Shown: piece after piece, positions 185-58,905 of the stretch
Numbering within the stretch: position 1 is the stretch's first letter
Layout: each line of letters begins with the position of its first letter
Sequence record: NC_016163.1
Strand: one strand, 5' to 3'
DNA: 64,000 bases
The notes under the pieces: model-generated
Database searches by the model: none
Told to the model about the DNA's origin: nothing
What the model saw: only the letters and a program-made list of their open reading frames with translations
Position numbers and translations under genes: made by a program

Positions 185-433
185 ATGTTGACTATTTATC
201 ATTTTATCATTAATAAATTAAATTGCCTGTTTTTCGTTCTAGTTTGTTTTGTACTGTTCCTACTCAGTTTTAGTTTATACGATTTCCTTAAACCGCAAAT
301 TGTCCTGATGCATCCTTTCTTAGCGGTTATTTCAAGTTTTGTTTTAATTGTGTTATATATTGGCTTTACTTTAAGTGCAGCTAAAACAGTTTCCGATTTC
401 GTTTTATATTTTACTAGAAATAAAAGAAATTAA
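185..433 (+). CDS. Small membrane protein (2 hydrophobic segments)
   Basis: RBS aaggag; two long hydrophobic stretches. Confidence 0.7.
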   Translation: MLTIYHFIINKLNCLFFVLVCFVLFLLSFSLYDFLKPQIVLMHPFLAVISSFVLIVLYIGFTLSAAKTVSDFVLYFTRNKRN

Positions 434-504
434 CAGATCTTTAGTAGTATCCCCCTAAGAAATTCTTAGGGGTTTTATAAATCTTTTTTTTCTGGATAAT
501 AATT

Positions 505-1080
505 ATGAATTGGAAAAAATTTCTTCCTAAAGTGGCTCTTTGGCTGGTGATGGTACCTGTGGACTTTATTATGGTTCTTACGGCCTATCCGATGTCTCCT
601 ATCATTGCTCTAATCTCTATGATTAAAGGTGAACCTCCTAAATGGGCTTGGTTGTGGCTAACTTATGATAACCCTATTGATGGTGATAGTGGACATCTAA
701 AACGTTGGGCCGATTATGTGGCTAAGTATCCTAAATGGGGTGTGTATTGCCGTAGAACTGCTTGGCTCTGGCGTAATAAAGTGTACAACTTTGCGTATAC
801 TTATGAAGGTATCAGTGTAGGTAAGATTGTTGTGGCTTCCGGTAATCCTAATACTGAATCTGGTAAACCTGGTAAAGAAGGTTATATCTGGTTAGTTGAT
901 GAAAATGGGTATTGGTGTCTATTCCTATTCAAACATTATACTAAAAACCTAGCAGTGCGTATCTATATTGGATGGAAATTTAAAGGTCTGTTAAAAGACC
1001 CTAATGGTAAAATTGAACGTTCAATGTTTGCTAACTTCTTTAGTCCATTTAGAATCTGGACTGGAAGTGACGATAAATAA
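505..1080 (+). CDS. Conserved phage hypothetical protein, N-terminal TM, TxDNxxDGD and WLWRN motifs
   Basis: ORF track; motifs LTYDNPIDGD and AWLWRNK; followed by hairpin 1089-1117. Confidence 0.6.
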   Translation: MNWKKFLPKVALWLVMVPVDFIMVLTAYPMSPIIALISMIKGEPPKWAWLWLTYDNPIDGDSGHLKRWADYVAKYPKWGVYCRRTAWLWRNKVYNFAYTYEGISVGKIVVASGNPNTESGKPGKEGYIWLVDENGYWCLFLFKHYTKNLAVRIYIGWKFKGLLKDPNGKIERSMFANFFSPFRIWTGSDDK

Positions 1081-1088
1081 ATGAATTT

Positions 1089-1117
1089 AACCCATATCCT
1101 CAAAAGGGATATGGGTT
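1089..1117 (+). terminator. Intrinsic terminator hairpin
   Basis: aacccatatcc / ggatatgggtt stem plus T tract. Confidence 0.75.
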
Positions 1118-1178
1118 TCTTAATTTCTTTTTTAAAAATATATAATTAAATAGAATAATCAACTAGTAAGGAAATAAA

Positions 1179-1463
1179 ATGAATATCTATGTAAATGAAT
1201 CAAATGGTGATGTCTACCAGTTAAAACGTAAAACGGCTCATAATGTCCTCTTTGATATTCTTTCAAAAGGTGATAAAAAAGAAGCTACAGTTATTCCTCT
1301 ATTAGCTACTAAGCCTTTAAAAGAAATGTCTGAAAACGATTATGTAATTAAAGTTCTTAAGAAATATGAAAGTAATGCTGAAAGTATCACTGTTAAAGAA
1401 CTTAATACATTACATAATCTAGGGTACCAACGTTTAACTCATGTAATGGATATGGCGATATAA
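1179..1463 (+). CDS. Hypothetical protein
   Basis: RBS aagga; coupled to the next ORF. Confidence 0.7.
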   Translation: MNIYVNESNGDVYQLKRKTAHNVLFDILSKGDKKEATVIPLLATKPLKEMSENDYVIKVLKKYESNAESITVKELNTLHNLGYQRLTHVMDMAI

Positions 1464-1464
1464 T

Positions 1465-1965
1465 ATGGAAATCAAACGTTCTTCATGGCATTTTATGCTA
1501 AATGATATTTTTTATAGTAATCCTGAAAAATTTAATACTCTGTGCTCTTATTTCTGGAGGACTGTATTTTCTGTATTCATAGTAATTATAGCTTTCTTAG
1601 CAGTTATATCAGCAGGTATGTTATATGGAATAATGCTTACTGACTGGTATATTGATAGTCATCCTAATACTATGATAGCTGATATAAGTTTGATATATCG
1701 TCGCCTAATCCAGATTCCTCTAGGTTTGATTGGAGTGATTATTACATTCTTTACTATAAAGTATTTAGTAGCTGGTTGGATTAAATTTTTAGTAACTCTT
1801 GGTGGATTCTTTAAACTTCTGAGAAAAAGTATAAAGAAACTGACTACTAAGCCTTTAAAAACTACTGTTAGTGAAATTAAGAAAGAACCGTCTTTAATTA
1901 TTGAAATGATTAAAGCTAAAAAGAAAAAGTATTGCCCAACCATAGAGTTTAAAGGTAAAAGATAA
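1465..1965 (+). CDS. Hypothetical membrane protein (2 TM)
   Basis: Two hydrophobic segments; SWH...LCSYFW motif. Confidence 0.7.
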   Translation: MEIKRSSWHFMLNDIFYSNPEKFNTLCSYFWRTVFSVFIVIIAFLAVISAGMLYGIMLTDWYIDSHPNTMIADISLIYRRLIQIPLGLIGVIITFFTIKYLVAGWIKFLVTLGGFFKLLRKSIKKLTTKPLKTTVSEIKKEPSLIIEMIKAKKKKYCPTIEFKGKR

Positions 1966-2009
1966 AGATTCCATAACTTTTTATTAGTATTATATCAAAG
2001 GAATTTATA

Positions 2010-2369
2010 ATGTACTATTTTCGTTCTGTTTCAAGTAATCCATTTCATAAAAATAATTTTCTGATTTCTAAGAATGAAGAAACCAATGAATTACTTACTA
2101 TTGAAAATAAAATTGTTAACCCTAAAGAGTCTTTAGAAATGGTTACATTAACTAAGGTCTATCCAAATTTCTTAGCTAATCGTATCTTTAGGAATATTAA
2201 GAATCAAGATCTGTATGAATTTTTAATGATTACAAATATTGATTGTGATGATATCAATAAATGGCCTTTAATGGCTGTTTACACTAATGTAAAATCGGGT
2301 AAAGTTTATTCTCGTCCTTTTGTAGAATTTCTTGAAAAATTTACCTATGAAAAATTCCTGAGAGGTTAA
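2010..2369 (+). CDS. Hypothetical protein with DUF1653-like C-terminal half
   Basis: FRNIKNQDLYE...AVYTNVKSGKVYSRPFVEFLEKF resembles the DUF1653 pattern (by eye). Confidence 0.5.
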   Translation: MYYFRSVSSNPFHKNNFLISKNEETNELLTIENKIVNPKESLEMVTLTKVYPNFLANRIFRNIKNQDLYEFLMITNIDCDDINKWPLMAVYTNVKSGKVYSRPFVEFLEKFTYEKFLRG

Positions 2370-2370
2370 A

Positions 2371-4464
2371 ATGGCTGATAAAATCATTGTACGTTATAAG
2401 GATACCCCTTATACTGTAAAAACTCTTTTAGATTTTCTTTCAGAATGTGCCAAAGTATATTATAGTACTGGTAAAAGAAAAATAAGTGATGAAGTTTTTG
2501 ATAAACTTCAACTTGTTTATGAAAAGCATTCTGGTAAAAGACTTCCAGTTGGTGGTAAAGTTGATGTAGGTAATACTCTTAGCTTAAGCCACTCATATGA
2601 GGACTTTGCTGGTACTCTTTTCAAGACTAAATCACCGGAAGAGGTCTACGACTGGATGAGGCGAAAAGGTATCAAACCTTCAAAAGCTGGAGTCCAGATC
2701 GCACTTAGTCTAAAAGCTGACGGTCATTCTATCACGGTAGAAACTAAGTATAACAAGAAAACTAAAGAACAGTATATACATAAAGCTCTTACCCGTGGTA
2801 AAGATGGCGTAGGTAAAGATCTCACTCCTATTTTTAAAGAATACGAACATTTACTTTACCTTCCAGTTATTGATGGAAAAAATTATGCTGTAGGTTATGA
2901 AGCAGTAATGACTTATAGTAATTTTACATTGTTCCATGAACAAGAAAAAGAAACATTTAACAATCCTCGTTCTATCATAGGCGCTATCCTATCAGATAGA
3001 GGTAATCAGTATTTTCCATATATTAATCTCATTGCTCTCAGGATTAAGACTGAAGATGATGAGCTTAGTCGTATTGATGCATTGGAGTATATTAATGAGA
3101 TTAATGAATCTCAGAATGAAGAAATTGATTTCGGTTTTTGGGTGGGTGAATTAACCAATAAAAAGAATAAAGGATATATGCTTGGTGGCGATGATTATAA
3201 GGATTTCAATGAAGCCTTAGAAGATTTCTATCAATGTGTAATTCAAAATCGTGAAGAAATTGATATCATGATTGATGGGGTAGTAATTGAGGTTCTTAAT
3301 GAAGATAAACGTCGTTCATTAGGTTACTCTGATTATGAACCTAACTTTGCAGCGGCTCTTAAATTCCCTCCAGCTGAAAAAGAAACTACCGTCGAAGATG
3401 TTAAATGGTCTGTAGAAGGTAAGTCTGGACGTTACACTCCAGTAGTGCATTTTAAACCAGTTAGTATTGATAATAACTCATACGTTAAAGTATCTCTTGC
3501 TAACTATAAACGGTTTAAGAATCTAAATCTTCATAAAGGTGATTCAATCTTATTTACTAGACGTAATGATGTATTAGGTTATGTTGATAAATTAGATGAA
3601 GATGCACCACCTAAAGGTGAAGCTTTTAAAGCTCCTAAGTTTTGTATTCATTGTGGAGAATCTTTAGCAGTAGTAAGTGCATATTTAGAATGCGTAAATC
3701 CGGCTTGTAAAACTAACGAGCTTGGTAATATTCTCAAGTTTATCGATGTACTCAATCTTAAGTTTATTGGTAGGAAAACGATAGAAAAACTATATGATAA
3801 TAAAATCATTAGTAAGTTCTCTGACTTCTTTGAATTAACTGATAAAGATTTTAAGAAAATTAAGTCCATTGATGGACTTGGAAATCATGTAATTAAGCTT
3901 ATTAATCAGTTAGTAGATAAGCTCAGTAATGAAGAAACTCCCGATTATCTATTCCTTGGGGCGTTCAATATCCCGTTGATCAGAGATGGTCGAGCTGAGA
4001 AGATCTTAAAAGGTATTACCCTTCCAGAGATTATTGATCTTATTGACTCTAAAGATAATGAGGCTATTTACCGAATCCTTTCTAATACTAATAATATTGG
4101 TATTAAGATTGTAGATGAACTGGCTAAAGCTTTAGGGGATGAAGGATATTATCGAAATGAATTAGGTATTCTATATGAGAATATGAATATCATTGATTCA
4201 AAGATTGATCAATCATCTTTAGGTAAAGATTTTGTATCTTTGACTTTCGTTCATACTGGTAGCGCTAAGCCACTGAAAACTAGGGATGAACTTAAACGCA
4301 TTATTTCTAGTAAAGGTCATAATTTAGTAGGAAGTGTTTCCAATAAGACAAACTATCTCATAAATAATGACGTAAATTCCACTACTGATAAGAATAAGAA
4401 AGCTAAAGAGCTTGGTATTCCAATCATTACTGTGGAAGAATTTGTGGCAATGATGAATGGCTAA
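2371..4464 (+). CDS. ligA: NAD-dependent DNA ligase
   Basis: Adenylation motif SLKADG, DGVV motif, Zn finger CIHC...CVNPAC, HhH repeats, C-terminal BRCT (VSNKTNYLI...KAKELGIPII). Confidence 0.95.
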   Translation: MADKIIVRYKDTPYTVKTLLDFLSECAKVYYSTGKRKISDEVFDKLQLVYEKHSGKRLPVGGKVDVGNTLSLSHSYEDFAGTLFKTKSPEEVYDWMRRKGIKPSKAGVQIALSLKADGHSITVETKYNKKTKEQYIHKALTRGKDGVGKDLTPIFKEYEHLLYLPVIDGKNYAVGYEAVMTYSNFTLFHEQEKETFNNPRSIIGAILSDRGNQYFPYINLIALRIKTEDDELSRIDALEYINEINESQNEEIDFGFWVGELTNKKNKGYMLGGDDYKDFNEALEDFYQCVIQNREEIDIMIDGVVIEVLNEDKRRSLGYSDYEPNFAAALKFPPAEKETTVEDVKWSVEGKSGRYTPVVHFKPVSIDNNSYVKVSLANYKRFKNLNLHKGDSILFTRRNDVLGYVDKLDEDAPPKGEAFKAPKFCIHCGESLAVVSAYLECVNPACKTNELGNILKFIDVLNLKFIGRKTIEKLYDNKIISKFSDFFELTDKDFKKIKSIDGLGNHVIKLINQLVDKLSNEETPDYLFLGAFNIPLIRDGRAEKILKGITLPEIIDLIDSKDNEAIYRILSNTNNIGIKIVDELAKALGDEGYYRNELGILYENMNIIDSKIDQSSLGKDFVSLTFVHTGSAKPLKTRDELKRIISSKGHNLVGSVSNKTNYLINNDVNSTTDKNKKAKELGIPIITVEEFVAMMNG

Positions 4465-4666
4465 ACTCAGTCAACAGCTCAATCAAATTTTTGTGGACAT
4501 CGAAAAAGGAATCGGTAATAGTCATGTTGTCGATTCCCTAAAATCCGGTATAGACTATGCATACATAGTCGAAGGTAAAAATACTAAGCTTTGGATAGAT
4601 GTAAAATCCTTAGATAGCGGATTTTTAGATGAACTAATCGATTTAAAATTAAGTAATAAACTCTAA
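4457..4666 (+). CDS. Hypothetical protein
   Basis: Overlaps ligase stop; lies in the operon. Confidence 0.6.
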   Translation: MAKLSQQLNQIFVDIEKGIGNSHVVDSLKSGIDYAYIVEGKNTKLWIDVKSLDSGFLDELIDLKLSNKL

Positions 4667-4676
4667 GGAAATTGAA

Positions 4677-5009: not shown

Positions 5010-5020
5010 AAAAAGTAAAT

Positions 5021-5058
5021 AAACCCCTATATCCCCTTTTGAGGGATATAGGGAGTTT
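5021..5058. terminator. Bidirectional terminator between convergent genes
   Basis: ccctatatccc / gggatataggg stem with A run upstream and T run downstream. Confidence 0.75.
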
Positions 5059-5066: not shown

Positions 5067-6023
5067 TTAATTTCTAGTTAAATCTAAGAACAGATTAGCG
5101 ATTTTAAGACCTTCTTTTCCACTTACTGATTCAAAGATAAAATCTTTAATCAAGTTAGAGGAATAAGCGCTACAGATAGTATAACCTAAGAATCCAGATA
5201 GCAATTCAATCATAAAGAGAGATTTTTCACCATACATAGTGATCATCTTTCTAATGAAAGTATTTACATCTAAGTCTTTAACTACAGTATAAGCCTCAGC
5301 TAGACCAGAGAATAGTCTTGGAAGAGATACTAAGTTTTCATCATTAAAACGTGTACCAAACTCAGCAATAGCTGAATCAGCGATACTAGATTGCTGTTTT
5401 GCTACTTGCATTGCAATGGCATTTCTAGTTTCTTTGTTTAGAGGGTGATCTCTCTCAACCACATATGATAAGAAGAACTTAGCGATACTATAGCTAATAG
5501 CTGCCGATTGTACTGGAATAGAAGCAGTAGCATACATACTATCGATTACACGCATAACCATACGAGTATATACTATAGCGGCGTTGGTCAGTAAAGGGGT
5601 AGAATATACAAGTTTATTGTAATTTTCAGCATACTTACGTTGAACGTGAGCATACATTAATACACCAAATACTTCTCTTGGCTGATAGCTACTGAAACTA
5701 TATTTGTCTCTAATCTTGATTTTACCAAACAAGTTAGCGATACCAGTATAGTCTTTACCGTTATTGATAGCCCATCCAGTCAAATTCAGACCTGGAACAT
5801 ACAAACAATCTATATGTCCTGATTCTAAATCATCGAGAATTACCTGCTTACCAGATACACTAATCTTTGACTTAATATCACTTGAGATAAGATTCAGTTG
5901 GTCTTTAGTGAGACGATAGTCTTCAGCCTTAGTCATTGCACCTGTTACTTGAGTAAGCATTCGGTTAGCATTGACGATCTCACCAATATATGTATCTTTT
6001 AAAGAACGAAATTTGAAAGACAT
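5067..6023 (-). CDS. Hypothetical protein, probably virion-associated
   Basis: 318-aa ORF in a late minus-strand operon. Confidence 0.6.
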   Translation of the reverse strand: MSFKFRSLKDTYIGEIVNANRMLTQVTGAMTKAEDYRLTKDQLNLISSDIKSKISVSGKQVILDDLESGHIDCLYVPGLNLTGWAINNGKDYTGIANLFGKIKIRDKYSFSSYQPREVFGVLMYAHVQRKYAENYNKLVYSTPLLTNAAIVYTRMVMRVIDSMYATASIPVQSAAISYSIAKFFLSYVVERDHPLNKETRNAIAMQVAKQQSSIADSAIAEFGTRFNDENLVSLPRLFSGLAEAYTVVKDLDVNTFIRKMITMYGEKSLFMIELLSGFLGYTICSAYSSNLIKDFIFESVSGKEGLKIANLFLDLTRN

Positions 6024-7822: not shown

Positions 7823-9130
7823 TTATGATTCTACTATTACATTGTTGACATCTGCACGATTCTTCTGAAGATATTCATCATACAAATCATTAACCTCTGA
7901 AATAGGGGCATACATGAAGAATTTGTAATCATAATTAGCGTAAGGACTCAGGATAGTAATAACCTTAGTCTTCCAATTAATTTGATAATCTTCATCTTCT
8001 ACTAATTCTTTTCTATCCCTAAATAGTTTATAAATAAGGTTAGTGGCTTTAAGCTCATCAAAATTATCTTGGCTTCTCAGATAATCGATATAGTAATTAG
8101 GTGCCCTAGCTAATTGCTCACCAAAATCAATTTCTTCAATAGGCGAGTTAGCCTCAGTTACAAGTTCTAGCCCCAATATTGATTTTTTATTACCGATTTG
8201 ATGAGGTATCCCCCAATTAAGAGTCCAGTGCATACCTACATCATTCATACCACCTTCAGTAATGAGAAATTCATCATCAATTGGCTCATTGGCAAGATTA
8301 TAGCTTTCGGCAATAAAGTAATTATGGTTATTATACTCAACTTCTACAGTAAAACGTAGCATTGATTCGCTAACAGCTTTATTATCTTTTTGAGCATCTG
8401 GTACTTCAAAGTTAGGAATGCGGATTAGAATATTCGTTCCGTATCTATAAAAGAACTGTTTTTTACCAGTAGAATGGTGAGTTTTATAAGTAACTTTACC
8501 ATCTGAAATTTTATGTATCCACTCAGCAAATAAATTCAAAGAATCTTTATCCTTTAAATTGTAACCTTTATGTTTAGCTATATAACCAATAGAGGATGCT
8601 GGAAGTGGAACTTCTAATGAGTAGTCATTGAGATACCTATATCTGTTTGTACCCAACTTATTGGATAGATAACCCTTAATATTAATACTTTCCATTTCAG
8701 TTTTATTTGAAATGATAATATCAAAGTTATGTCTGGCCCTAGAAGTAATAGCAGATATATAGGTTTTAGTCTCTTCATCGTATACTATTTTAGTATACAT
8801 TCTTTCACGGTTTGCACCACGAAAAGTATACATATTTGCCATTAAGAATGGATCTGCTAAAAATGAAGTATCACCAGTTTGATTCTCATAATTCATTTTG
8901 ATAGACATTCTAGGTAATGGCTTCATATTTTTCAAATCATCATCTAATGGTTGCTCAGTAACAGCAGCTATTGAGTTTCCAATAAATACTTGCTTCAAGT
9001 AGGTCGGAGGGAATAATGAGATAAAGTACTCCCTGACAACGCCGATTAAACTTGAATATAAAGCATTAGTCACCGTCATCTCATACTTAGTGACTACGAG
9101 TTTATTATCAGTAAACTGTATATCGCTCAT
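7823..9130 (-). CDS. Putative virion (neck/tail-completion-like) protein
   Basis: 435-aa ORF in late operon; the function is a guess from context. Confidence 0.5.
   Translation of the reverse strand: MSDIQFTDNKLVVTKYEMTVTNALYSSLIGVVREYFISLFPPTYLKQVFIGNSIAAVTEQPLDDDLKNMKPLPRMSIKMNYENQTGDTSFLADPFLMANMYTFRGANRERMYTKIVYDEETKTYISAITSRARHNFDIIISNKTEMESINIKGYLSNKLGTNRYRYLNDYSLEVPLPASSIGYIAKHKGYNLKDKDSLNLFAEWIHKISDGKVTYKTHHSTGKKQFFYRYGTNILIRIPNFEVPDAQKDNKAVSESMLRFTVEVEYNNHNYFIAESYNLANEPIDDEFLITEGGMNDVGMHWTLNWGIPHQIGNKKSILGLELVTEANSPIEEIDFGEQLARAPNYYIDYLRSQDNFDELKATNLIYKLFRDRKELVEDEDYQINWKTKVITILSPYANYDYKFFMYAPISEVNDLYDEYLQKNRADVNNVIVES
7835..7846 (-). promoter_or_regulatory. Late-type promoter AACA-N6-TA
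   Basis: Plus strand TA-ttacat-TGTT. Confidence 0.6.
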
Positions 9131-9186: not shown

Positions 9187-9298
9187 AACTTTAAATGATA
9201 CAAGTGTATCACAAATCACACAAGGAATACAGACAGCGTAGGATCCGACAACCTAACCATCTATATCCTTGTTAACCAAAAATTCATAGGAAATCATA

Positions 9299-9310
9299 TA
9301 AATTTTTGTT
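9299..9310 (-). promoter_or_regulatory. Late-type promoter AACA-N6-TA
   Basis: Plus strand TA-aatttt-TGTT, identical to 31863-31874 and 40509-40520. Confidence 0.65.
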
Positions 9311-9737: not shown

Positions 9738-11096
9738 TTAATTCGTAAATAAAGTTTCTAAACCTAACAGGGTATCTTTGGCTGGTAGGAAGTCACGATT
9801 GAAAAGACCTGTATCTGCGTCAATCATCATATTATGTACATACAACGGCTTGAACAACTCACAATACTCTTTAGAGAAGATTGCAATAAAGTTAAGAACA
9901 TCACCATCATAGTCTGCTCCTAAAGAAGACAGAATAAGGTTATGGATCGATGCAGTTAGATCATGTTTATCTCGCTTAACGCCAGCGCATTTGATTATCA
10001 TTACCGAACCGATATTGATTGATGGGTTTCGGTTAATGATAAACTTGACATTCTTAGAAGTAATAATCTCATTTACAATATTGTAAACGGTTTCATTAAA
10101 CTTCAATGTAGCTTTATAAAAGATTTCATTTGCCTTCATAAATGTCGTCTTATGTAAAGTACGAATTTTACGAATTACAAATGGCCTCATAAGTTCTAAA
10201 GCAGCATTATATGGAATTGTAAACTCATCCATTTCATATTCACCAGTAAGAGGTGTGATTACCATCCTACTAGAGAAGTTAAATCGGTTTCCGATAAGAG
10301 TACTACGGATATAACCATCTTTTTCACTAAGATTATCTACGATGTTAGTGTAGATATTATTCAGCGCTAGTTGATTATTGTACAACAATGGTAAAATATT
10401 AAGATCATTCTGTTCCATACTTGATAAATCTCTAAGAATATTAGAGTTTTTAATCAAGATATTATAGTAATTATTAATCTCTTCAAAGCTAAACTCTCCG
10501 TCTACTACAATAGCTGGACGAAGACGAACGTTAATGATAGGGTAATAATAAATGAACACTTGTTCAATATGTTCCATTACAAAATCATATTCTTTTTGCT
10601 TCTTTTTCTTTTTCAAGAAATAATTCATTACAGTTTCGAAATTATCCATGAAACGAATAATACCGATACCGGTAAATGGTTCTTTCAAAGGAGGTTCAAT
10701 TAATTGACCTTCTACTTTAATATCACCTTTATAGTTAATGATATTACTTAGTACTGAAGCGCCAATAATTTTTTGAAGATAGATGTAAAATAATGGATGA
10801 ATACATGGATACTCAAGATCAATCCAGCCCTCTTTATCTAACATTAATCCACGGAATGTAACCTCTGAACCACAATCCTCTTCTTCGCAAATTTCGCCTT
10901 TATGGAATTCACCATGTAAGGCACCACATGTACATGACCATTCAATACCAGAAGCCATGTTACCGAAAATAGTTGGGGAGAAGATACCATCTTCAGTGAA
11001 CTTTTTATTATCACCTTCTAACGGATTTGGATTCTGAATGATACGGTGTAGATTAGCTTCTTCATTCAGATTTCGTACATCCATTCTAATACTCAT
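9738..11096 (-). CDS. rpoC: Phage multisubunit RNA polymerase beta'-like subunit, N-terminal/catalytic part (probably non-virion RNAP)
   Basis: DGIFSPTIFG, Zn-binding CTCG...C...C, GNRFNFSSRMVITP, INRNPSI, catalytic GADYDGD; early-type promoter at 11144-11151. Confidence 0.92.
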   Translation of the reverse strand: MSIRMDVRNLNEEANLHRIIQNPNPLEGDNKKFTEDGIFSPTIFGNMASGIEWSCTCGALHGEFHKGEICEEEDCGSEVTFRGLMLDKEGWIDLEYPCIHPLFYIYLQKIIGASVLSNIINYKGDIKVEGQLIEPPLKEPFTGIGIIRFMDNFETVMNYFLKKKKKQKEYDFVMEHIEQVFIYYYPIINVRLRPAIVVDGEFSFEEINNYYNILIKNSNILRDLSSMEQNDLNILPLLYNNQLALNNIYTNIVDNLSEKDGYIRSTLIGNRFNFSSRMVITPLTGEYEMDEFTIPYNAALELMRPFVIRKIRTLHKTTFMKANEIFYKATLKFNETVYNIVNEIITSKNVKFIINRNPSINIGSVMIIKCAGVKRDKHDLTASIHNLILSSLGADYDGDVLNFIAIFSKEYCELFKPLYVHNMMIDADTGLFNRDFLPAKDTLLGLETLFTN

Positions 11097-11151: not shown

Positions 11152-11298
11152 TTTTTATAAGAATTATTAACTTTTTTATTCAGGAACATAGAAATTTTTT
11201 ATAAAAATATACTATATTTATAGTTCAAACATCTAAATAGTTTAAAATATTTAACAAAAATCATAGATTAAATGATTTTTTTTAAAAAGGTAAATAAT

Positions 11299-11976: not shown

Positions 11977-12087
11977 TATAAACCCTATACCCTCTTTATG
12001 AAGGTATAGGGTTTATAATTTGAATTTCAATCATATATTATATTAGTAGTAACAGGAATTTAGTAGTTTAAAACCGAAGGTATTCCA

Positions 12088-15483: not shown

Positions 15484-15524
15484 AAATTTCCCTTATGTAA
15501 TTTTACTATAAAAATTTATACTAA

Positions 15525-16202
15525 TTAAGTGTTATCTTTAGGAGATTCTTTATACTCAAGTACTTTCAAGAAATCACCTTTTACGAGGGATTTTCTTTCT
15601 ACCAATTGACGGACTATTTCTATATCAAAATCTGAGAAATAATCAGTATATTCTTTATAAAACTGCTCCCAATTACCAAATATTTGCTTTCTGGTAATAT
15701 TTAGTCTATTAAGGTGAGCTAATTGGTGCATGGTCACAGTTAATGGAACCAAACCAATTTTACCAGAAAAGTGTTCCTGAAGTACTTTATCAGCAATAAT
15801 AAAAGTGGATACTTTCTTATTATCTTCCATATACTTTTGTGTTACTACCGAACAAATAGTATATAAATTAAATGGAAAGTGATGTAATTGTATTTCTGCA
15901 TCAGAAGAAGAGATATTTTGAAAGAAAGCGTCACCGGATAATTGATCAATATCTCTTAATTCCTCAAGCCATAATTTATAATCATCATTACTTCTTATAG
16001 CTTTTTCAACAGCTCTGATGAATTTACCATATGTTCGTTCATCAATATCTTGATCGAGATACATAGTAAGGGAATATTCCTGATTCTTTCCCAATATCTC
16101 TATATTATCATCATCTGGTTCTAGATTATCTACTTCTACATCTAGAACTCTAATATCATCTTGTGATATTTCTATATCTTCTTTTTGCTTCTTTTTAGCC
16201 AT
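15525..16202 (-). CDS. His-cluster protein, paralog of 13264-14151
   Basis: IQLHHFPFNLY...IGLVPLTVTMHQLAH. Confidence 0.65.
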   Translation of the reverse strand: MAKKKQKEDIEISQDDIRVLDVEVDNLEPDDDNIEILGKNQEYSLTMYLDQDIDERTYGKFIRAVEKAIRSNDDYKLWLEELRDIDQLSGDAFFQNISSSDAEIQLHHFPFNLYTICSVVTQKYMEDNKKVSTFIIADKVLQEHFSGKIGLVPLTVTMHQLAHLNRLNITRKQIFGNWEQFYKEYTDYFSDFDIEIVRQLVERKSLVKGDFLKVLEYKESPKDNT

Positions 16203-18606: not shown

Positions 18607-18714
18607 ATAAAAACTCCTTATAGTTTAACAATTATTTGTTGTAAGTATAATATTTTATATACTAGTTATTGATATATTATATTATTGATAGCTATTTTGT
18701 CTGAAAGGAATATT

Positions 18715-22158: not shown

Positions 22159-22246
22159 CGGTTTTTCCTTAGTTAATCATGAAATAACTAAAGAACTGTT
22201 AGAAAATAAAACACCCCATATCCACTTTTAAGGATATGGGGTAAAT

Positions 22247-22519: not shown

Positions 22520-23097
22520 TTAAGGAAATCCTTGTATTTAACTTGTTTGTAAGTATCTAACAATTTGTTTTTGTCATTAGAATTTTGTAAAATTTTACTT
22601 ATTTCTATTTTAGAATCGTTAATCTTACGAAGTAGTTTATTACGTAATTTAAGTATTTCTTTTATATCATTAAATGATAAAATAGTTACATTACCGTCTT
22701 CATTTTTAATTCTTAATGGCTCAAACTCTTCTGCTCCGAGATAGAAACAACTTTCAAGTAATTGGAATACTGGAGAAGAAATTCTTATTTCAGTTGCACC
22801 ATATGAAATTATATGGTTTTTGTTTATATCGTTGATACTTTCTATATGAAAATTAGCAATCTTCTCCTTCAGCTCACTAACATTAATATTTTCACTAAAA
22901 TGTACTACTTTAGGATTGCCGAAGTTATCAAACCCCATTTCGTATTCCGGAGACCTAGTGAGCTGTAGACAGAATCTCTTATAATCCCCTTCACTAATTT
23001 CTTTATACGGCTTAGGTACATTAACAGGTACAGGAATTATAGTTTTGTACAAACCTTTACTTTTAAGACTTACAAAGTAGTGATATTTTTGTTGCAT
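22516..23097 (-). CDS. Hypothetical protein, possibly tail-assembly related
   Basis: Late context beside a DUF4376-like gene. Confidence 0.55.
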   Translation of the reverse strand: MQQKYHYFVSLKSKGLYKTIIPVPVNVPKPYKEISEGDYKRFCLQLTRSPEYEMGFDNFGNPKVVHFSENINVSELKEKIANFHIESINDINKNHIISYGATEIRISSPVFQLLESCFYLGAEEFEPLRIKNEDGNVTILSFNDIKEILKLRNKLLRKINDSKIEISKILQNSNDKNKLLDTYKQVKYKDFLK

Positions 23098-27608: not shown

Positions 27609-27645
27609 AGTAAGATTACCTTTTATTTATCTTATATAAAAGAAC

Positions 27646-27657
27646 TAAAAAGTTGTT
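27646..27657 (-). promoter_or_regulatory. Late-type promoter AACA-N6-TA
   Basis: Plus strand TA-aaaagt-TGTT. Confidence 0.65.
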
Positions 27658-31833: not shown

Positions 31834-31862
31834 AATTTGTTTTACCTTTTTATGAAAAGATC

Positions 31863-31874
31863 TAAATTTTTGTT
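31863..31874 (-). promoter_or_regulatory. Late-type promoter AACA-N6-TA
   Basis: Plus strand TA-aatttt-TGTT. Confidence 0.65.
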
Positions 31875-34707: not shown

Positions 34708-34748
34708 AGATAAATCCTTCGTATTAGATTTTCTTTATATAAATATAC

Positions 34749-34760
34749 TAAGAAATTGTT
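34749..34760 (-). promoter_or_regulatory. Late-type promoter AACA-N6-TA
   Basis: Plus strand TA-agaaat-TGTT. Confidence 0.65.
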
Positions 34761-37613: not shown

Positions 37614-37700
37614 ATTAGTTTATCCTGTGTAATAAATAGTCAATGATTTTCATTGTCAACTATTAAAGTGTTGAATAGAATTAATTAGAATTTATTGAAA

Positions 37701-40469: not shown

Positions 40470-40523
40470 AATCTTTCCTAATTTTTAAATATTTAATATG
40501 TCACATACTAAATTTTTGTTAAG

Positions 40524-41548: not shown

Positions 41549-41708
41549 ATAGCAATCCTTCTAAAAATTTTAAACAAAACATAAAAGATTCTAAATTCTT
41601 GTTTCAAAAACCTTAATGTGGATCATATAAATTTTAAAACTTTGTGTAAACAAACAATCTTTTTAGGATATATAATTACTTGGAATACCATACTTAAGGT
41701 ATAAAATT

Positions 41709-45867: not shown

Positions 45868-46462
45868 TTTTACTTTATCTATTGATAGTGATAAATTTGA
45901 AAAGAATATTAATGCTTATTTAAAATTTAGTATGAATAAGCTTTATGCTAATCTAGCTATATTATTTCTAAGTTCGATAGCATTTATCCTGTTTTCTGAT
46001 AGATTTGAAGTACTACAGCATATTGTAGTAAGAATCTTATGGGGAGTAATCATGTTTAGAATGCTAATACGGATTCTTTACATGAATAGCTTTATCACGA
46101 CAGTTTATAAGAAAAAGACAAAACTTATAAATAAGATCAAGAACTCCCATACGTCTTTTAATGTAAATACTTTAGCTAAGAGTAAAGAGCACCTATATAA
46201 AAGCGTAATTAATAGACTAAGAGAAAATATTCAAACGCTAGTATTAGCTAAGAATAATTCAGATCTTACCACGTCATTTACTTGTAAAGTAGATGCATTA
46301 AGTGATTCATCAATTTCTATACTTTCTTTTGAGCTACATAGAAGTTATATACGTATAACAGATGGTAGAAACATTCTGGTAGTTGATCTTCCAGTTGTTA
46401 AATCAAAATATGAGGCTTTACAACCTCTTTCAATTTTACTACACTCAATTAAAGTAGATTAA
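45860..46462 (+). CDS. Membrane protein (2 TM plus soluble domain)
   Basis: Two hydrophobic segments near the N-terminus. Confidence 0.7.
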   Translation: MNNFTLSIDSDKFEKNINAYLKFSMNKLYANLAILFLSSIAFILFSDRFEVLQHIVVRILWGVIMFRMLIRILYMNSFITTVYKKKTKLINKIKNSHTSFNVNTLAKSKEHLYKSVINRLRENIQTLVLAKNNSDLTTSFTCKVDALSDSSISILSFELHRSYIRITDGRNILVVDLPVVKSKYEALQPLSILLHSIKVD

Positions 46463-47557: not shown

Positions 47558-47608
47558 AAAATTCGTTATAACAAACAAAGTTTTAGAATTCCACAAGGAA
47601 ATTTATAA

Positions 47609-48931: not shown

Positions 48932-50026
48932 TAAAATGGCTCTCATTAAACCTCTTTAATTGTCTGGAAAACCTTAATTACCGCGAATTAAGACAACCAG
49001 CAGCGAAGCTTATGGTATTAACACCTATAAAGGATTATAGGATGCATAAGAACGTTCAACGACTATCGAAAGTACTTATGATAATTCATAGGGTAAATGA
49101 GTAGAGTAGCGCCAAGTGGTAGGTATCATAATGATAATAGTTATGAATAAATCCTTTAAAGCGAAACGGGAGGCAAAGGATTGAAGATATAGTCTGATCT
49201 GCATGGTGACATGTAGAGTTAGTTGAAAGTGATTTCTTAACAAAATCTTAGTATCTAAGAGGATTTAATTTATGCCAGTTAAGAAAACACATGCACAATT
49301 CGTAAAAGAAGTTGAATTAAGATTTGGAAAAGAATATACAGTTTTAGGGGAGTATAAAAACACTCATACTCCAATAAAACTGCGGCATAATAAATGTGGT
49401 AATATATGGGAAACTACTGCTCCATATGATTTACTAAAACCAAAACCTAATGGTTGTAAATTATGTGCAATTAATAGATCATTTCCATTGACTACTAAAG
49501 AATTTTCAGTTAAACTAAATGCAATTCATAATAATTCTTATAAAGTTCTGCAAGAATATAAGAATAATAAAACCAAAATTTTAGTTCGCCATAATTGCGG
49601 ATATGAATTTATGGTTAAACCGAATAGCATTCTAACAGAAAAGTTTAATTGCCAATCATGCCAAAAAACAAATTCAGTAATAAGTGATTCAATTGCTGAA
49701 TTTCTTAATGAAGAAAATCTTAATTTCATCCAAGAAAAAAAGTTTAAATGGTTAAAATATGAATCTCTATTATCTATAGATTTCTATCTGCCAGATTTTA
49801 AAATTGGTATAGAAGCTGATGGAGAACAACACTACATTCCTAAACGTGGTGGAATTAAAGAGTTTGAAAAAACTCTTAAGAGAGATTTGATCAAATTTAA
49901 ACTTTGTAAAGAACATGGTATAGAAATACTGAGAATACCTAGTTTTTTAACTAAAAAAGAAATTTCTTTGTATCTTGGAAAACTTCTTTTAGAAAGAAAT
50001 GTCTTTCAACTAGATTAACACAAATG
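48932..50026 (+). mobile_element. Group I intron in gyrB (1095 nt) with homing endonuclease
   Basis: Exon ends in U48931 and intron ends in G50026; splicing restores EG|DSAGG; P1 ugagggu/gcucuca; core P aattgtctggaaa, Q caaccagcagc, R gttcaacgacta, S aagatatagtct. Confidence 0.93.
49272..50018 (+). CDS. Intron-encoded endonuclease: Zn-ribbon repeats plus Vsr-like PD-(D/E)xK domain
   Basis: Two repeats ending in CxxC; IDFYLPDFKIGIEADGEQH. Confidence 0.8.
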   Translation: MPVKKTHAQFVKEVELRFGKEYTVLGEYKNTHTPIKLRHNKCGNIWETTAPYDLLKPKPNGCKLCAINRSFPLTTKEFSVKLNAIHNNSYKVLQEYKNNKTKILVRHNCGYEFMVKPNSILTEKFNCQSCQKTNSVISDSIAEFLNEENLNFIQEKKFKWLKYESLLSIDFYLPDFKIGIEADGEQHYIPKRGGIKEFEKTLKRDLIKFKLCKEHGIEILRIPSFLTKKEISLYLGKLLLERNVFQLD

Positions 50027-55818: not shown

Positions 55819-55917
55819 ATATTATTTTAGTGAGAGGAAAAAGATATTAATGGAAAACTATATCTTTTTCCACAATTAACTTATTGAAAGAAGTTTCATA
55901 AAAAGAGGAATAAAGCA

Positions 55918-57255
55918 ATGCCAGAGATGAATCCGGATACTATTCGCAATCAGGTTATCGAAATCGCTAAAGGTGAAGCGGTTATCACTGTTCCAAATCC
56001 GGTTCCTTGCAGCCTGGATACTTTCCTGTCTGCCATGACTTCTCCTGAAGTCGTAATCAACACTTTCCTGCCAAGTGATCTCTATGACAAAGACTCTCTG
56101 AATGAAGAAGAATTCAAAGAGATCGCTTTCAGCGTTTACACTAACGTGCTGTCATACACTTACGGCGCTACCAACGTTGTACCTTTCAGCTTCGACGACA
56201 ACTGTCCACCGCTGGCCCGTCAGAACCTACTGCTGCAAAACTTCATTGAAGCTGGCGGCACCAAAGAAACTCTGGACGTTCTGGGCGTAAAAGGTTTTGA
56301 GAAAGCTTTTTCTATGCTCCTGCTGCCGCTGGGTATCGCTCAGTGTGCTAACATGACTGATGTTCGTAAGAGCATCGAAGCCCTGAACAAAATCAACGAT
56401 GGCGAAGACCGTATTAAAAATAACATCAACGTTATTATGGGCTTCAACATTCCACTGGAAACCAGTCTTGATGATATTGAAGCGCTGGCGCGTGAAGGTA
56501 ACATCGACGTTAACCTGTTCCTGGCTCGTCAGAAACCGGAATTCAATACCGTTGAAGTAATTCATCGCTTCAAAGAATTCCTGGATCCTTCCCGCGTTAT
56601 GATTCAGGTTGATTTCACTGAAGACGCTTTCCGTACTTTGCTGGATGAAGGTTATTTCAGCGATGTACGTGATCAGCTCTTCACGGTTGCTAATCCAATG
56701 ATCATGGAGCTGGCTGATCTGCGTGAGAAGTATTGGGATAAATTCTCATGGGAACGTGCGCTGGTTAAGTACACTTTCTCTGAAGAAATCCTGAATCGTA
56801 TTATCAGTGAAGGTAAAATGAACTGGGCTGTAGCTTCTGTGTTCCAGGTAATGTCTGATGAAATGATTCTCGCTAACAACGATGAAATCACTTTCTGGCG
56901 TCCTGAGTTCAACTTTGACTACTGGTTCAAGGGTGAAAACGACAATAAAGAACTGCGTGCAGAATACGCTAAGCATACTCCTACCAACGAAACTGTTGCA
57001 TGGAATGAAGTTATCCGTCGTCATAAAGACAAGCAGGAACTTCTGATGCTGGCTGCAATCACCGTTTCTGAAATGCCGATTGCTGTTGAACTGACTGACG
57101 AAAGCGGTTCCACCGTTGAATCCCGTGTAAGTAACCCGCAAAATGATAAACCAGTTGATCAGCGCATCAAACACAAACTTCTAATTCCAGAAGTAGTGGA
57201 TGGTAAACTTCAGTATTCTGAAGAAAAAGATCTCTCTAACTTTTATGAAGGTTAA
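55918..57255 (+). CDS. Strongly codon-biased early protein of unknown function with Trp-containing helical repeats
   Basis: RBS gagga; many CTG/TTC/ATC/AAC codons unlike its neighbours; own promoter and UUCG terminator. Confidence 0.8.
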   Translation: MPEMNPDTIRNQVIEIAKGEAVITVPNPVPCSLDTFLSAMTSPEVVINTFLPSDLYDKDSLNEEEFKEIAFSVYTNVLSYTYGATNVVPFSFDDNCPPLARQNLLLQNFIEAGGTKETLDVLGVKGFEKAFSMLLLPLGIAQCANMTDVRKSIEALNKINDGEDRIKNNINVIMGFNIPLETSLDDIEALAREGNIDVNLFLARQKPEFNTVEVIHRFKEFLDPSRVMIQVDFTEDAFRTLLDEGYFSDVRDQLFTVANPMIMELADLREKYWDKFSWERALVKYTFSEEILNRIISEGKMNWAVASVFQVMSDEMILANNDEITFWRPEFNFDYWFKGENDNKELRAEYAKHTPTNETVAWNEVIRRHKDKQELLMLAAITVSEMPIAVELTDESGSTVESRVSNPQNDKPVDQRIKHKLLIPEVVDGKLQYSEEKDLSNFYEG

Positions 57256-57264
57256 TTGATCTAT

Positions 57265-57290
57265 AAAAGATCCTCTTCGGAGGATCTTTT
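57265..57290 (+). terminator. UUCG-tetraloop intrinsic terminator
   Basis: aaaagatcctc-ttcg-gaggatctttt plus T tract. Confidence 0.85.
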
Positions 57291-57405
57291 TTTTTTTTAT
57301 ATTCTTTTTATGTATATATAATTATAAGGATATTAAAGGAATTTAAAAAGTTTCCTTTAACCTAACAAATATTTGTATATCACAATAAACAGAGGAATAT
57401 AAGTT

Positions 57406-57615
57406 ATGGCTGAAAACATTGTTCAGCAATCCCTTGAGGAAGTATTTGCAGAACGTTTCAAAACTTATGGTAGTGAAACTGTAAAAGAACGTTCTATTCC
57501 TTCTGTAGAAGATGGATTCTTACCCGTAATGCGTCGTATTATTTATACTATGTATAAAGAAGGTGCTTATCCACGTTTTACTAAAGCTGCTCAATTTGTA
57601 GGTACTACTATTGGT
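57406..57615 (+). CDS. gyrA: DNA gyrase subunit A, exon 1 (join 57406..57615,58906..61194; 832 aa)
   Basis: RSIPSVEDGFLPVMRRII, KAAQFVGTTIG; promoter AACA-aatatt-TG at 57364-57375. Confidence 0.92.
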
Positions 57616-58905
57616 TAACTTATATCTTTTTAGTACTATCTAGTGATGTATCCTCCCAAAATTGATCCCTAACAGTGTTTTAGTATCTATAAGGATCAAT
57701 TATGAAAAGTAAATCAAAACAACTTAAGATAATTAGCAAGAAGTATTTAAATGCATTAGATTTCTATTATAGTAATGACCATTCGGCAACTTTTGTAGCC
57801 AAAAAATTTCAGCTATCAAAAAATACTTTGTTGAGAATGGTTCGTCTTGGAAATTTTGAAGAATTACCTGATGGTAATATAGCTGAAAAAGATCAAGATT
57901 ATTATATGTGGAAAAATATAATGCATATTTACAAAACTACTAATAAATCGGCTAATGAATTATGTCTAGAATTCAATGTAGGTAAATCATCCTTTGCTAA
58001 AAATCTTAAATATTTTAATTTAAGTTATAAAGGTAGGAGTAACCTGATTGAATTTAAAAGAGATATATTTTCTAAAATAGATTCAAGCGATAAAGCATAC
58101 TGGCTTGGGTTTATTTTAGCTGATGGTTGCATTTATAAAAATGAATTGCGGCTTAAATTAGGGAAAGTAGATTACGTTCATTTGCAAAAATATTGTGATT
58201 TTTTAGGGCTGAGTCATAATCATATTGTTAAAGATGCACATACAATAAAAGTAATTGTATGTGATAAAAAAATGATTATCGATCTTAATAAATTAAATAT
58301 TTTTTCTAAAAAATCATGTAAAGAAATTCCACCCATAATAGATCCTATTTTTCATAGAGATCTATTACGTGGATTCTTTGATGGCGATGGATGTATTAAA
58401 ACAAATCTTGCTTCAATATCTTTAGTAGGTAGTAAGGATATGATGGATTTCTGCAATAAAGTATTCCATGAAGAATTAGGAATACCTTTAGGTAAAGTCT
58501 ATTCAGATAAAAAAGTTTATAGATTGGCTTGGTATAGTCTTTTCAATAAACAAAGTATCCTTAGTTGGTTATATGATGGGAGTCATACATATTTAGATAG
58601 GAAATTTAGCTTAGCTAAAAAGATTGGCCGTCTATGAAAGTAATTTTATAGATTATTATTGGGGAAGAAAACGGGAAGGGTTTAGCTATCCTAATCCGAC
58701 TGGAAGGCTATATTTAAAAGTATAGTCACAGGCAACGCATAGTAGGTGAACCTTATAGCGATATAAGAATATAATCCTGCCACGAGTCCCCGACATCCTA
58801 TATAGGATGAAAAGATATGCTAGGCTGGATTGGAAAAGACCAATCGATGAAAATGAGGGAAACCTCCAGAGAGTAAGATAAAAAGCTTACTGTTAATAAC
58901 TACCG
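57616..58905 (+). mobile_element. Group I intron in gyrA (1290 nt) with LAGLIDADG endonuclease
   Basis: Exon ends in U57615 and intron ends in G58905; splicing restores IG|RYHPHGD; core after the ORF: aaaacgggaagg, aatccgac, ggcaacgcatag, aagatatgctag. Confidence 0.92.
57702..58637 (+). CDS. Intron-encoded two-motif LAGLIDADG homing endonuclease with N-terminal HTH-like region
   Basis: AYWLGFILADG and LLRGFFDGDG motifs. Confidence 0.9.
   Translation: MKSKSKQLKIISKKYLNALDFYYSNDHSATFVAKKFQLSKNTLLRMVRLGNFEELPDGNIAEKDQDYYMWKNIMHIYKTTNKSANELCLEFNVGKSSFAKNLKYFNLSYKGRSNLIEFKRDIFSKIDSSDKAYWLGFILADGCIYKNELRLKLGKVDYVHLQKYCDFLGLSHNHIVKDAHTIKVIVCDKKMIIDLNKLNIFSKKSCKEIPPIIDPIFHRDLLRGFFDGDGCIKTNLASISLVGSKDMMDFCNKVFHEELGIPLGKVYSDKKVYRLAWYSLFNKQSILSWLYDGSHTYLDRKFSLAKKIGRL

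Follow-up and report, generated by a model that had tools for sequence, protein, structure and literature searches.

AACA-N6-TAG, a probable promoter of the middle and late genes of Yersinia phage phiR1-37

The sequence AACA-N6-TAG is, with a probability of about 0.88, the middle and late promoter of Yersinia phage phiR1-37, read by the phage's own non-virion RNA polymerase (nvRNAP) in combination with the sigma-like protein g245. The window, meaning the whole stretch of 64,000 nucleotides analysed here, is identical to this phage (100% identity), its base 1 corresponding to base 186001 of the record. A preliminary description of the window, which cited phiR1-37 as one of two phages with deoxyuridine (dU) DNA without recognising it as the source, had proposed a dU genome from the motif. 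Since the window belongs to phiR1-37, an established dU phage, this proposal is correct. The experimental proof is that of Kiljunen 2005, as reported by citing papers (PMC5449584, PMC7598289, PMC10303552). The dU content has thus been known since 2005 and is not new.

The motif and its placement

The preliminary description wrote the motif as AACA-N6-T(A/G), a pattern present at all 16 coordinates it listed. In this loose form, matches across the whole window are fewer than expected (74 versus 115.8 ± 9.8 in shuffles), and enrichment emerges once the count is limited to intergenic DNA, read in gene sense across the whole genome (74 versus 20.9 ± 4.8 in shuffles). The motif is real, but its true form in phiR1-37 is the narrower AACA-N6-TAG. 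Only A is enriched as start base, so the A/G alternative did not hold.

In the whole genome, AACA-N6-TAG occurs 69 times, compared with 60.7 expected from base composition. Its distribution is far from even: in 59 of the 69 cases, a start codon on the same strand follows within 10-150 nt (5.6 expected, P ~3e-39), and only 10 fall outside this zone, against 55 expected (P ~1e-13). Intergenic sites number 58 in the gene sense and one in antisense, and dinucleotide shuffles of intergenic DNA yield 2.4 ± 1.7 in place of the 58. The spacing is equally strict, with at most five sense intergenic AACA-Nx-TAG sites for each spacer from 0 to 12 other than N6, and with a sharp N6 peak of 67 sense intergenic sites for the shorter AACA-N6-TA. 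Antisense to coding DNA, one site is found at N6 versus 5-26 at other spacers. Moreover, 52 of the 59 sites have G at +2, a position to which the selection was blind. The distance from site to start codon has a median of 32 nt, and the motif logo displays no conservation upstream of -13.

The exact AACA-N6-TAG sites of the window are as follows:

432..444, plus strand: 62 nt before g263; shares bases with the g262 stop, with an annotated hairpin (452-472) downstream
5386..5398, minus strand: within g270, no downstream gene; chance match or internal promoter
7834..7846, minus strand: within the final codons of g272; structural gene g271 follows after 34 nt
9261..9273, minus strand: 132 nt before structural gene g272, with an annotated hairpin (9161-9186) between
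11228..11240, plus strand: downstream of an early-class promoter (11143-11167); structural gene g275 follows after 60 nt
12051..12063, plus strand: 26 nt before g276, abutting an early-class promoter (12028-12049)
15521..15533, minus strand: 39 nt before structural genes g281-g280
22188..22200, minus strand: 14 nt past a terminator (22214-22241); g290-g289 (lysis protein) follow after 31 nt
22557..22569, minus strand: within the 3' part of g292; g291 follows after 39 nt
27645..27657, minus strand: just past a terminator (27671-27700); tail-fibre gene g294 follows after 38 nt
31862..31874, minus strand: 30 nt before g295, just past a terminator (31885-31912)
34748..34760, minus strand: 42 nt before g296, 7 nt after a terminator (34767-34794)
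37660..37672, minus strand: 48 nt before tail-fibre genes g298-g297
40508..40520, minus strand: 40 nt before g300-g299, 8 nt after a terminator (40528-40554)
41591..41603, minus strand: 44 nt before g302-g301, in a divergent gap opposite the g303 early promoter
46370..46382, plus strand: within g307, 91 nt before g308; possible internal promoter
47574..47586, plus strand: g311 (first gyrB/topoisomerase part) follows after 24 nt
49239..49251, plus strand: 23 nt past a group I intron match (48911-49216); the endonuclease g313 follows after 22 nt
57671..57683, plus strand: between gyrA parts g327 and g329; homing endonuclease g328 follows after 20 nt
61514..61526, plus strand: within g330, 274 nt before g331; candidate only

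Three further sites from the preliminary description are variants:

9299..9310, minus strand: TAT variant
18629..18640, minus strand: TTG variant, 23 nt before structural gene g285
57364..57375, plus strand: TTG variant, just past an early-class promoter (57310-57334)

Thirteen of its 16 sites are thus exact. The other three are unsupported because the TAT and TTG classes occur at background level; the one at 18629..18640 could be a weak variant promoter. At least five exact sites had been overlooked (12051 on the plus strand, 15533, 22569 and 9273 on the minus strand, 46370 on the plus strand), in addition to the intragenic 5398 (minus) and 61514 (plus). The earlier statement that the motif precedes most late genes is fair, though not all are covered: no recognisable site was found for the post-terminator units g292 and g279-g277. 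The exact sites occupy the block of virion and tail-fibre genes, in which the record annotates no promoters and Table S2 offers only guessed 'Sigma' promoters. Two sites, 432 and 9273, have annotated terminator hairpins downstream of them, an unusual arrangement for promoters.

Published RNA-seq data are consistent with a promoter active in the later part of infection. Behind the 16 window sites, the first gene in every case increases from the middle to the late stage (16/16; median late/middle ratio 1.86), compared with a median of 0.93 for genes behind early-class promoters (Mann-Whitney p = 1e-4), several of which likewise rise late. By the late/early ratio, the two promoter classes are not distinguishable (p = 0.13). 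Individually, g308 increases from 189 to 935 TGR and the LATE gene g311 from 1086 to 5081 TGR, g328 is listed as LATE, and the site at 432..444 stands between g262 (EARLY) and g263 (LATE) in Table S2. The starts of the ten new RNAs of the 2016 report do not fall at AACA-N6-TAG sites. Public RNA runs containing the phage consist of assembled contigs of ~25 kb each, which cross all gene boundaries and end at none; a raw-read RNA run contained no phage sequences.

A related polymerase and the predicted recognition

The preliminary description had likened the motif to the late promoter of Bacillus phage AR9, and this likeness is borne out by the shared AACA-N6-TA core, strand logic and leader length, as well as by a gp226 homologue carrying the uracil-pocket residues. 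In AR9/PBS1, nvRNAP with gp226 recognises the late promoters, AACA-N6-T[A/G], on a template strand that contains uracil (Lavysh 2017, Sokolova 2017, Fraser 2022), and the AR9 motif is a promoter proven by start-site mapping and in vitro transcription. The gp226-like subunit expected elsewhere in the phiR1-37 genome is g245 (genome positions 174370-175872), whose sole PDB match is AR9 gp226 (7S01 chain A, E 6e-18). With it, phiR1-37 encodes a complete AR9-like second polymerase and specificity subunit, parts of which lie in the window:

1..81, plus strand: 3' end of g261, C-terminal half of nvRNAP beta, 36% identical to AR9 ORF 73219-75216
9738..11096, minus strand: g274, N-terminal half of nvRNAP beta', 35% identical to AR9 g270, which is annotated as a non-virion RNAP subunit

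An early-class promoter (11130-11154) precedes g274. Alignment of gp226 with g245 pairs V206/I207 with V229/I230, S245 with S268 and Y246 with F269; in the beta-N subunit, R363 corresponds to R386 and K375 to R397. The gp226 residues F261 and Y263, which make main-chain contacts to -9G, are not conserved as such and are replaced in phiR1-37 by S284 and F286. The g245 helix with the uracil-pocket valine (2.1bis) is conserved in 20 uncultured relatives (22 homologues).

The reading enzyme, the start point and the uracil dependence in phiR1-37 are proposed by homology to the solved AR9 holoenzyme. Promoters of the AR9 type are defined in part by initiation that needs uracil at template positions -11 and -10 and that works when the template is single-stranded. 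According to this model, AACA-N6-TAG would serve as the promoter of non-early (middle and late) genes, with the multisubunit nvRNAP and g245 as its reader. The template strand would be recognised as 3'-UUGU-5' at -11 to -8 in the dU genome, with the -10 uracil predicted to flip into a pocket formed by Val229 and Ile230 of g245 and Arg386 of beta-N. A thymine methyl group would not fit this pocket, and therefore only the phage's own uracil DNA would be transcribed. The most likely first nucleotide of the transcripts is the A of TAG and the second its G, so that leaders would measure ~30 nt. Late units are compact modules, in which the next promoter often follows a terminator hairpin within 7-34 nt.

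The parallels to AR9 extend to several levels. Both phages have dU genomes and share AACA, the 6-nt spacer, T at -1, A at +1, and the logic of strand and position; their leader medians are 32 nt (phiR1-37) and 31 nt (AR9). Polymerase and sigma-like subunit are homologous, the Val-Ile pair of the -10U pocket is kept, and in both phages an AT-rich early-class promoter (ATATATTAT...) precedes the sigma-like and polymerase genes. In contrast, G at +2 is nearly invariant in phiR1-37 (80-88%), whereas AR9 has T or A there and G in 12 of 76 sites. The start base is G in ~18% of AR9 sites but not above background in phiR1-37, and tandem early-plus-late promoters, common in AR9, occur in 2 of 59 cases in phiR1-37 (strict core). 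The host of phiR1-37 is Gram-negative, the subunits are ~30-38% identical, and the AR9 promoters were mapped experimentally, those of phiR1-37 being predicted from sequence.

A more distant comparison is offered by phiKZ, which has a distantly homologous five-subunit polymerase with a fifth subunit of the gp68/gp226 type and a short consensus near the start, likewise lacking a -35 element. Its late promoter, however, is TATG (G being the start), read by nvRNAP with gp68, and its DNA contains thymine.

RNA-level and host-polymerase readings

The motif might instead be an RNA element of the 5' leader, one that directs processing or cleavage, affects mRNA stability or signals translation, for example. 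Such an element would also be strand-specific and situated 20-60 nt before start codons, and read-through transcripts could carry the sites at 432 and 9273, upstream of hairpins. This reading is nevertheless improbable. Many sites are preceded by a strong terminator at 7-34 nt or occupy divergent gaps (41603; genome 167501/167524), where an upstream transcript is not expected. Additionally, back-to-back palindromic pairs make sense as two DNA promoters rather than as an RNA signal, core and spacing are identical to those of the proven AR9 promoter, and the avoidance of antisense sites in genes fits selection against spurious initiation.

Recognition by the host RNA polymerase, through sigma-70 or a phage-encoded specificity factor, appears slightly less probable still. 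It is suggested by the 'Sigma promoter' entries in Table S2 before g302, g285 and other structural genes, a guess of the genome paper, and by weak sigma-70-like matches (9/12) overlapping 40520 and 41603 among the matches listed. Between 22000 and 41800, however, sigma-70-like sites are not enriched (87 versus 97 ± 10 in shuffles), and of the eight late-type sites in this stretch, six coincide with none among the matches listed. The logo of the late-type sites contains no conserved -35 element or TATAAT-type hexamer, such as sigma-70 promoters carry 16-18 nt apart, and the phage possesses its own AR9-like second polymerase with a specificity subunit.

Relatives and prior literature

The AR9-type promoter reading is further strengthened by related phages. 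The same spacer and strand test was applied to AR9, LPJP1, MarsHill and PhiPA3. In AR9, it recovered the N6 peak (97 sense versus 16 antisense), matching the experimentally mapped promoter class; AACA-N6-TA also peaked at N6 in the gene sense in LPJP1 and MarsHill, and the AACA test was flat in the phiKZ-like PhiPA3. In the Listeria phage LPJP1, the S6/MarsHill group of Staphylococcus phages and uncultured relatives, the putative late promoters share this sense N6 peak, and gp226 homologues are present. Position +2 holds T in LPJP1 and MarsHill (73-80%) and in the P0008 lineage, and G in phiR1-37 and the P0002 and P0006 lineages.

Conservation can also be followed at single positions. One orthologous divergent gap carries back-to-back AACA-N6-TAG pairs with unrelated spacers in phiR1-37 and two relatives (L065 and L066), and is free of substitutions in a relative with 94.6% overall identity. 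L068, L069 and L070 keep the motif at a second orthologous site. Across phages of 27-41% GC, AACA and TAG are retained at orthologous positions and the spacers differ. A functionless by-product of AT-rich intergenic composition or terminator tails, to which the loose-pattern deficit in the window, the near-compositional genome total and the sites abutting terminator T-runs might point, is refuted by the shuffle, antisense and upstream-zone counts, and the single sharp N6 peak, the roughly half of window sites without an adjacent hairpin and this conservation leave it a negligible chance.

Parts of this picture were anticipated. Fraser 2022 (PMC9209446), the source of the AR9 promoter structure and the V206G result, already deduced a shared uracil-dependent recognition from the valine conserved in gp226 homologues. 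AR9 nvRNAP, which needs uracil, shows partial activity on the genomic DNA of phiR1-37 and is inactive on phiKZ DNA (PMC5449584). Leskinen 2016, describing the phiR1-37 transcriptome, saw no new conserved sequences, and no late consensus for this phage appeared in the literature surveyed; Skurnik 2012 and Korn 2021, the likeliest places for a prior description, lie outside that survey. Because such a consensus was reported absent, AACA-N6-TAG fills a stated gap. The DNA-side consensus is what the surveyed literature lacked; the AR9-type promoter and dU DNA are less new than the preliminary description assumed.

A tentative extension, rather less likely than the promoter assignment and somewhat short of even odds, is that AACA-N6-TA(G) ahead of late genes, together with the conserved helix YSD-x-V-[I/M]-W of the sigma-like subunit, may form a sequence-only signature of uracil-DNA genomes, with G at +2 marking a lineage whose polymerase has a changed initiating-nucleotide site, a point beyond the reach of the AR9 structures. 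If so, the group of dU jumbo phages, now a handful of isolates, would widen to take in a larger uncultured clade. The search returned 20 gp226-type homologues, on contigs of up to 235 kb, with 27-41% GC in the loci read.

A probable promoter motif at gene starts

An AR9-like, uracil-dependent late promoter of the form AACA-N6-T(A/G) had been proposed in the preliminary description at 16 positions of the window, together with possible deoxyuridine (dU) DNA. The pattern is present at all 16 positions; across the window, it is not enriched over shuffled sequence (74 found against 115.8 +/- 9.8). Genes were called on the whole 262,391-bp genome, and intergenic AACA-N6-TA sites were selected with the +2 base left free. 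Throughout the genome, G occupies this unselected position in 52 of the 59 sites, and the phiR1-37 motif is accordingly taken as AACA-N6-TAG (the exact or late-type site). In intergenic DNA of the whole genome, this motif occurs 58 times in gene sense and once in antisense. All other spacers from 0 to 12 give at most five TAG motifs each in gene-sense intergenic DNA, and dinucleotide-preserving shuffles of the same intergenic sequences yield 2.4 +/- 1.7 AACA-N6-TAG (maximum 9).

The genome total of exact sites is 69, with 60.7 expected from base composition. Fifty-nine of them are found at a distance of 10-150 nt before a start codon on the same strand, where 5.6 would be expected (Poisson P ~3e-39); the remaining 10 fall outside this zone, against an expectation of 55 (P ~1e-13). 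Within genes, N6 is under-represented compared with the other spacers, and the deficit is greatest on the antisense strand (1 against 5-26). The motif is concentrated at gene starts and avoided elsewhere, which is why the looser pattern seems unenriched across the window. Such strong avoidance outside promoter zones offers a measure of how tightly a short promoter shapes a genome.

Among the variants at N6, TAG alone is enriched. The TAA, TAT, TAC and TG- variants occur at background counts and were rejected as members of the class, as were single mismatches at the first three AACA bases, also at background level. Position -8 is the only tolerant one of the AACA element, with AAC[CGT]-N6-TAG found 12 times in sense and once in antisense. 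Thirteen of the 16 positions first proposed are exact AACA-N6-TAG sites, and the other three fall in background-level variant classes and are unsupported:

9299-9310, minus strand: proposed site, variant class at background
18629-18640, minus strand: proposed site, variant class at background
57364-57375, plus strand: proposed site, variant class at background

The list was also incomplete, omitting exact sites at 12051 (+), 15533 (-), 22569 (-), 9273 (-) and 46370 (+).

That the sites are host sigma-70 promoters is a guess which the data do little to favor: in 22000-41800, the number of sigma-70-like sites does not exceed that in shuffled sequence (87 against 97 +/- 10), the logos contain no conserved -35 element, and six of the eight late-type sites of this interval overlap none of the sigma-70-like sites listed, a list beyond which lie 27 weaker ones. 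A motif acting at the RNA level is hard to reconcile with sites that come right behind terminators, occupy divergent gaps or form back-to-back pairs on the two strands. The shuffles, the strand asymmetry and the sharp peak at one spacer rule out a composition artefact. It is strongly supported that the sites form a real AR9-type promoter class, with a lineage-specific G at +2 and predicted start sites.

This consensus fills a gap stated explicitly in the phiR1-37 literature. Leskinen 2016 (PMC4848604) confirmed 56 AT-rich promoters and reported 'no new conserved sequences', and the lack of a described phiR1-37 late promoter was remarked on by the AR9 group in 2017. Judged from Leskinen 2016, Lavysh 2017, Sokolova 2020 and Fraser 2022, and from full-text literature searches, which returned no later description, the phiR1-37 late consensus is unreported, although an earlier account may exist elsewhere. 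With about 59 sites, the consensus provides the missing promoters for virion and tail-fibre genes, displaces guessed sigma-70 sites and lets the puzzling 'constitutive' expression classes be reinterpreted. The sites are also ready templates for studying uracil-dependent template-strand recognition in a second, distant system. To our knowledge, no other characterised uracil-DNA phage infects a Gram-negative host.

No new mechanism is revealed, and the dU conclusion is already textbook for phiR1-37. The window is itself DNA of this phage, named in the preliminary description merely as a dU comparison; by megablast against the phage collection, 27000-35000 is 100% identical to phiR1-37 (AJ972879.2 / NC_016163.1), and the first base of the window corresponds to position 186001 of the record. 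The proposal of dU DNA was right, and had been established by the experiment of Kiljunen et al. 2005, as cited in PMC5449584, PMC7598289 and PMC10303552.

Sites in the window and the expression of their units

The window holds 20 exact sites, 17 of them 20-132 nt before a same-strand gene. Eleven minus-strand units are headed by such sites and between them contain nearly every virion and tail-fibre gene of the window:

g302-301, g300-299, g298-297, g296, g295, g294-293, minus strand: site-headed units
g291, g290-289, g281-280, g272, g271-270, minus strand: site-headed units

An annotated terminator hairpin stands 7-34 nt before six sites, at 7-14 nt for five of the six. For two units that also follow terminators, g292 and g279-g277, no AACA-N6-TAG site can be recognised. 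Annotated terminator hairpins at 452-472 and 9161-9186 are positioned downstream of the exact sites 432-444 (+) and 9261-9273 (-), respectively, and would fall in the first 10-100 nt of the transcript. Despite the hairpin at 452-472, g263 behaves as a late gene; g262 is early. Hairpins so near the start are either non-terminating, or 5' stabilisers or attenuators.

Table S2 of Leskinen 2016 (PMC4848604) supplied expression data for the first gene after each site of the window. Every one of these 16 genes rises from middle to late infection (median ratio 1.86, range 1.17-2.31), against a median of 0.93 for 13 genes with early-class promoters alone, that is, the AT-rich class annotated in the phiR1-37 record (Mann-Whitney p = 1e-4). 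The late/early ratio does not separate the promoter classes (p = 0.13), probably because the structural and virion genes g270-g302 have U-shaped read counts, higher early and late than in the middle, as in g294 (4402 / 3080 / 5603). The same profile probably accounts for the 'not regulated' class of Leskinen 2016 and for the fact that no late motif was found there. Such a U-shape points to late RNA carried over into the early samples or to infection that was not synchronised in them. For window 36000-41999, each of three RNA runs that contain the phage gave one assembled contig of about 25 kb, crossing every gene boundary, and a fourth run, of raw reads, contained no phage reads. None of the ten new RNAs of Leskinen 2016 starts at a late- or early-type motif, their coordinates looking rounded and thus undiscriminating.

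Promoters annotated in the GenBank record are of another class, AT-rich and 25 nt long (ATATATTAT...TGA), and no such early-class feature coincides with an AACA site:

134-158, window coordinates: annotated ATATATTAT...TGA promoter
1134-1158: same class
16222-16325: same class
41664-41688: same class, with others in the record

This class is close to the AR9 early consensus, AAATATATATTAT-N6-G. A verified early-class promoter precedes g245, the phiR1-37 homologue of the AR9 sigma-like subunit gp226 (Table S2, Leskinen 2016), and AR9 g226 is likewise preceded by an early promoter in the annotation of the AR9 record. Tandem early and late sites are rare in phiR1-37 (2 of 59 by the strict core, for instance, 12028-12049 followed by 12051). 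The virion structural gene g326 (55813-57255) stands at about 185,000 TGR, the expression unit of Table S2, at all times, far above the other structural genes of the window; it is driven by an early-class promoter with an annotated stem-loop and has no late-type site.

Another site lies beside a putative intron:

48911-49216, plus strand: group I intron match (Rfam RF00028, 69.8 bits, full model) between the gyrB/topoisomerase parts g311 and g314

At 49239, 23 nt past this match and 22 nt ahead of the g313 endonuclease gene, stands a late-type site, an arrangement resembling an AR9 gene with its own intron-internal promoter (PMC5312081). Site 57671, before the homing endonuclease g328 between gyrA parts, looks analogous; Rfam at gathering threshold gives no intron near it. 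Genes g278 and g282 (13264-14151 and 15525-16202) are paralogues, both listed among uracil-DNA phage proteins in PMC10303552. No UDG inhibitor was found in phiR1-37 despite direct assays, including one of g280 (PMC10303552).

The AR9 counterpart and the probable reading machinery

For comparison, the whole genomes of AR9, Staphylococcus phage MarsHill and Listeria phage LPJP1 were put through the same test, with PhiPA3 as the outgroup. For AR9, it returns the late consensus already published (AACA-N6-T[AG]; 97 matches in sense and 16 in antisense, with 21-52 at other spacers), whose core is common to the phiR1-37 motif, in agreement with the AR9-type promoter first proposed. Smaller N6 peaks are present in LPJP1 and MarsHill, and PhiPA3 has none by this test. 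AACA, T(-1) and A(+1) are common to the logos of phiR1-37, AR9, LPJP1 and MarsHill, whereas the +2 base varies: phiR1-37 has G (80%), LPJP1 and MarsHill have T (80% and 73%), and AR9 has T or A. A median of 32 nt separates motif and start codon in phiR1-37, against 31 nt for AR9. The lineage-specific +2 base draws attention to the start-site half of the promoter, unresolved in AR9 structures.

Of the phage non-virion RNA polymerase (nvRNAP), the window contains g274, which shares 35% identity with AR9 g270, the beta'-N subunit of the AR9 enzyme, and the end of g261 (beta-C), at window 1-81. A gp226-like specificity subunit, looked for elsewhere in the genome, was found outside the window as g245 (genome 174370-175872, 500 aa), which pairs with AR9 g226. 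The sole PDB sequence that it matches is chain A of the AR9 holoenzyme (7S01, 7UM0, 7UM1; E 6e-18). In AR9, the template-strand -10 uracil lies buried, with gp226 I207 on one side and beta-N R363 on the other; a thymine methyl group would collide with the C-beta of gp226 V206, and the V206G enzyme accepts thymine (Fraser 2022, PMC9209446). V206/I207 correspond to V229/I230 of phiR1-37, inside a conserved YSD-x-VIW-x-YL-x-N helix; S245 is retained, and Y246 becomes F269. In the beta-N homologue (genome 132994-134544), AR9 R363 corresponds to R386 and K375 to R397.

On the protein side, conservation of the valine in gp226 homologues of dU phages had been noted and a common mechanism proposed (Fraser 2022, PMC9209446), and the phiR1-37 consensus is the piece added on the DNA side. 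AR9 nvRNAP has partial activity on DNA of phiR1-37 and none on that of phiKZ (Sokolova 2017, PMC5449584); the partial activity fits the shared AACA-N6-TA core. By homology with AR9, the A of TAG would be +1, recognition would depend on uracil, and the nvRNAP would be the reading enzyme.

Conservation in relatives

A protein search of viral contigs with g245 found no relative. In a large protein database, 20 homologues were detected, one 97% identical and several at 35-45%, on contigs of up to 235 kb. All 20 keep the g245 helix, and 21 of 22 sequences keep the valine. In phiR1-37 and in each of two relatives, contigs L065 and L066, two back-to-back AACA-N6-TAG sites occupy the divergent gap that separates the structural cluster from a DUF7487 gene:

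167501 (-) and 167524 (+), phiR1-37 genome coordinates, both strands: back-to-back pair with a TGTT/AACA centre

The pairs share the palindrome TGTTAACA (genome 167509-167516, outside the window; L065 3023-3030; L066 2845-2852). The GC content is 27% in L065 and 41% in L066, and the 6-nt spacers of the divergent-gap sites are wholly different. Three phages that are only distantly related have kept the back-to-back arrangement. Three relatives also share a second orthologous site, located 31-33 nt ahead of the gene following a large structural gene; two lineages have TAG there, and the third has TAT.

A closer relative, L071 (Logan SRR23258050 contig, 15.7 kb), has 94.6% DNA identity to phiR1-37 (630 mismatches in 11.7 kb), and the phage collection holds none as close. 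Over the approximately 90 nt of the divergent promoter gap compared, it has no substitution relative to phiR1-37. Near its polymerase and replication block, the uncultured relative at 45% identity has one gene encoding an Acb2/Tad1-hairpin domain, of an anti-defence sponge family, and another encoding an RVT_1 reverse transcriptase (L068 18547-18831; L065 19383-21500).
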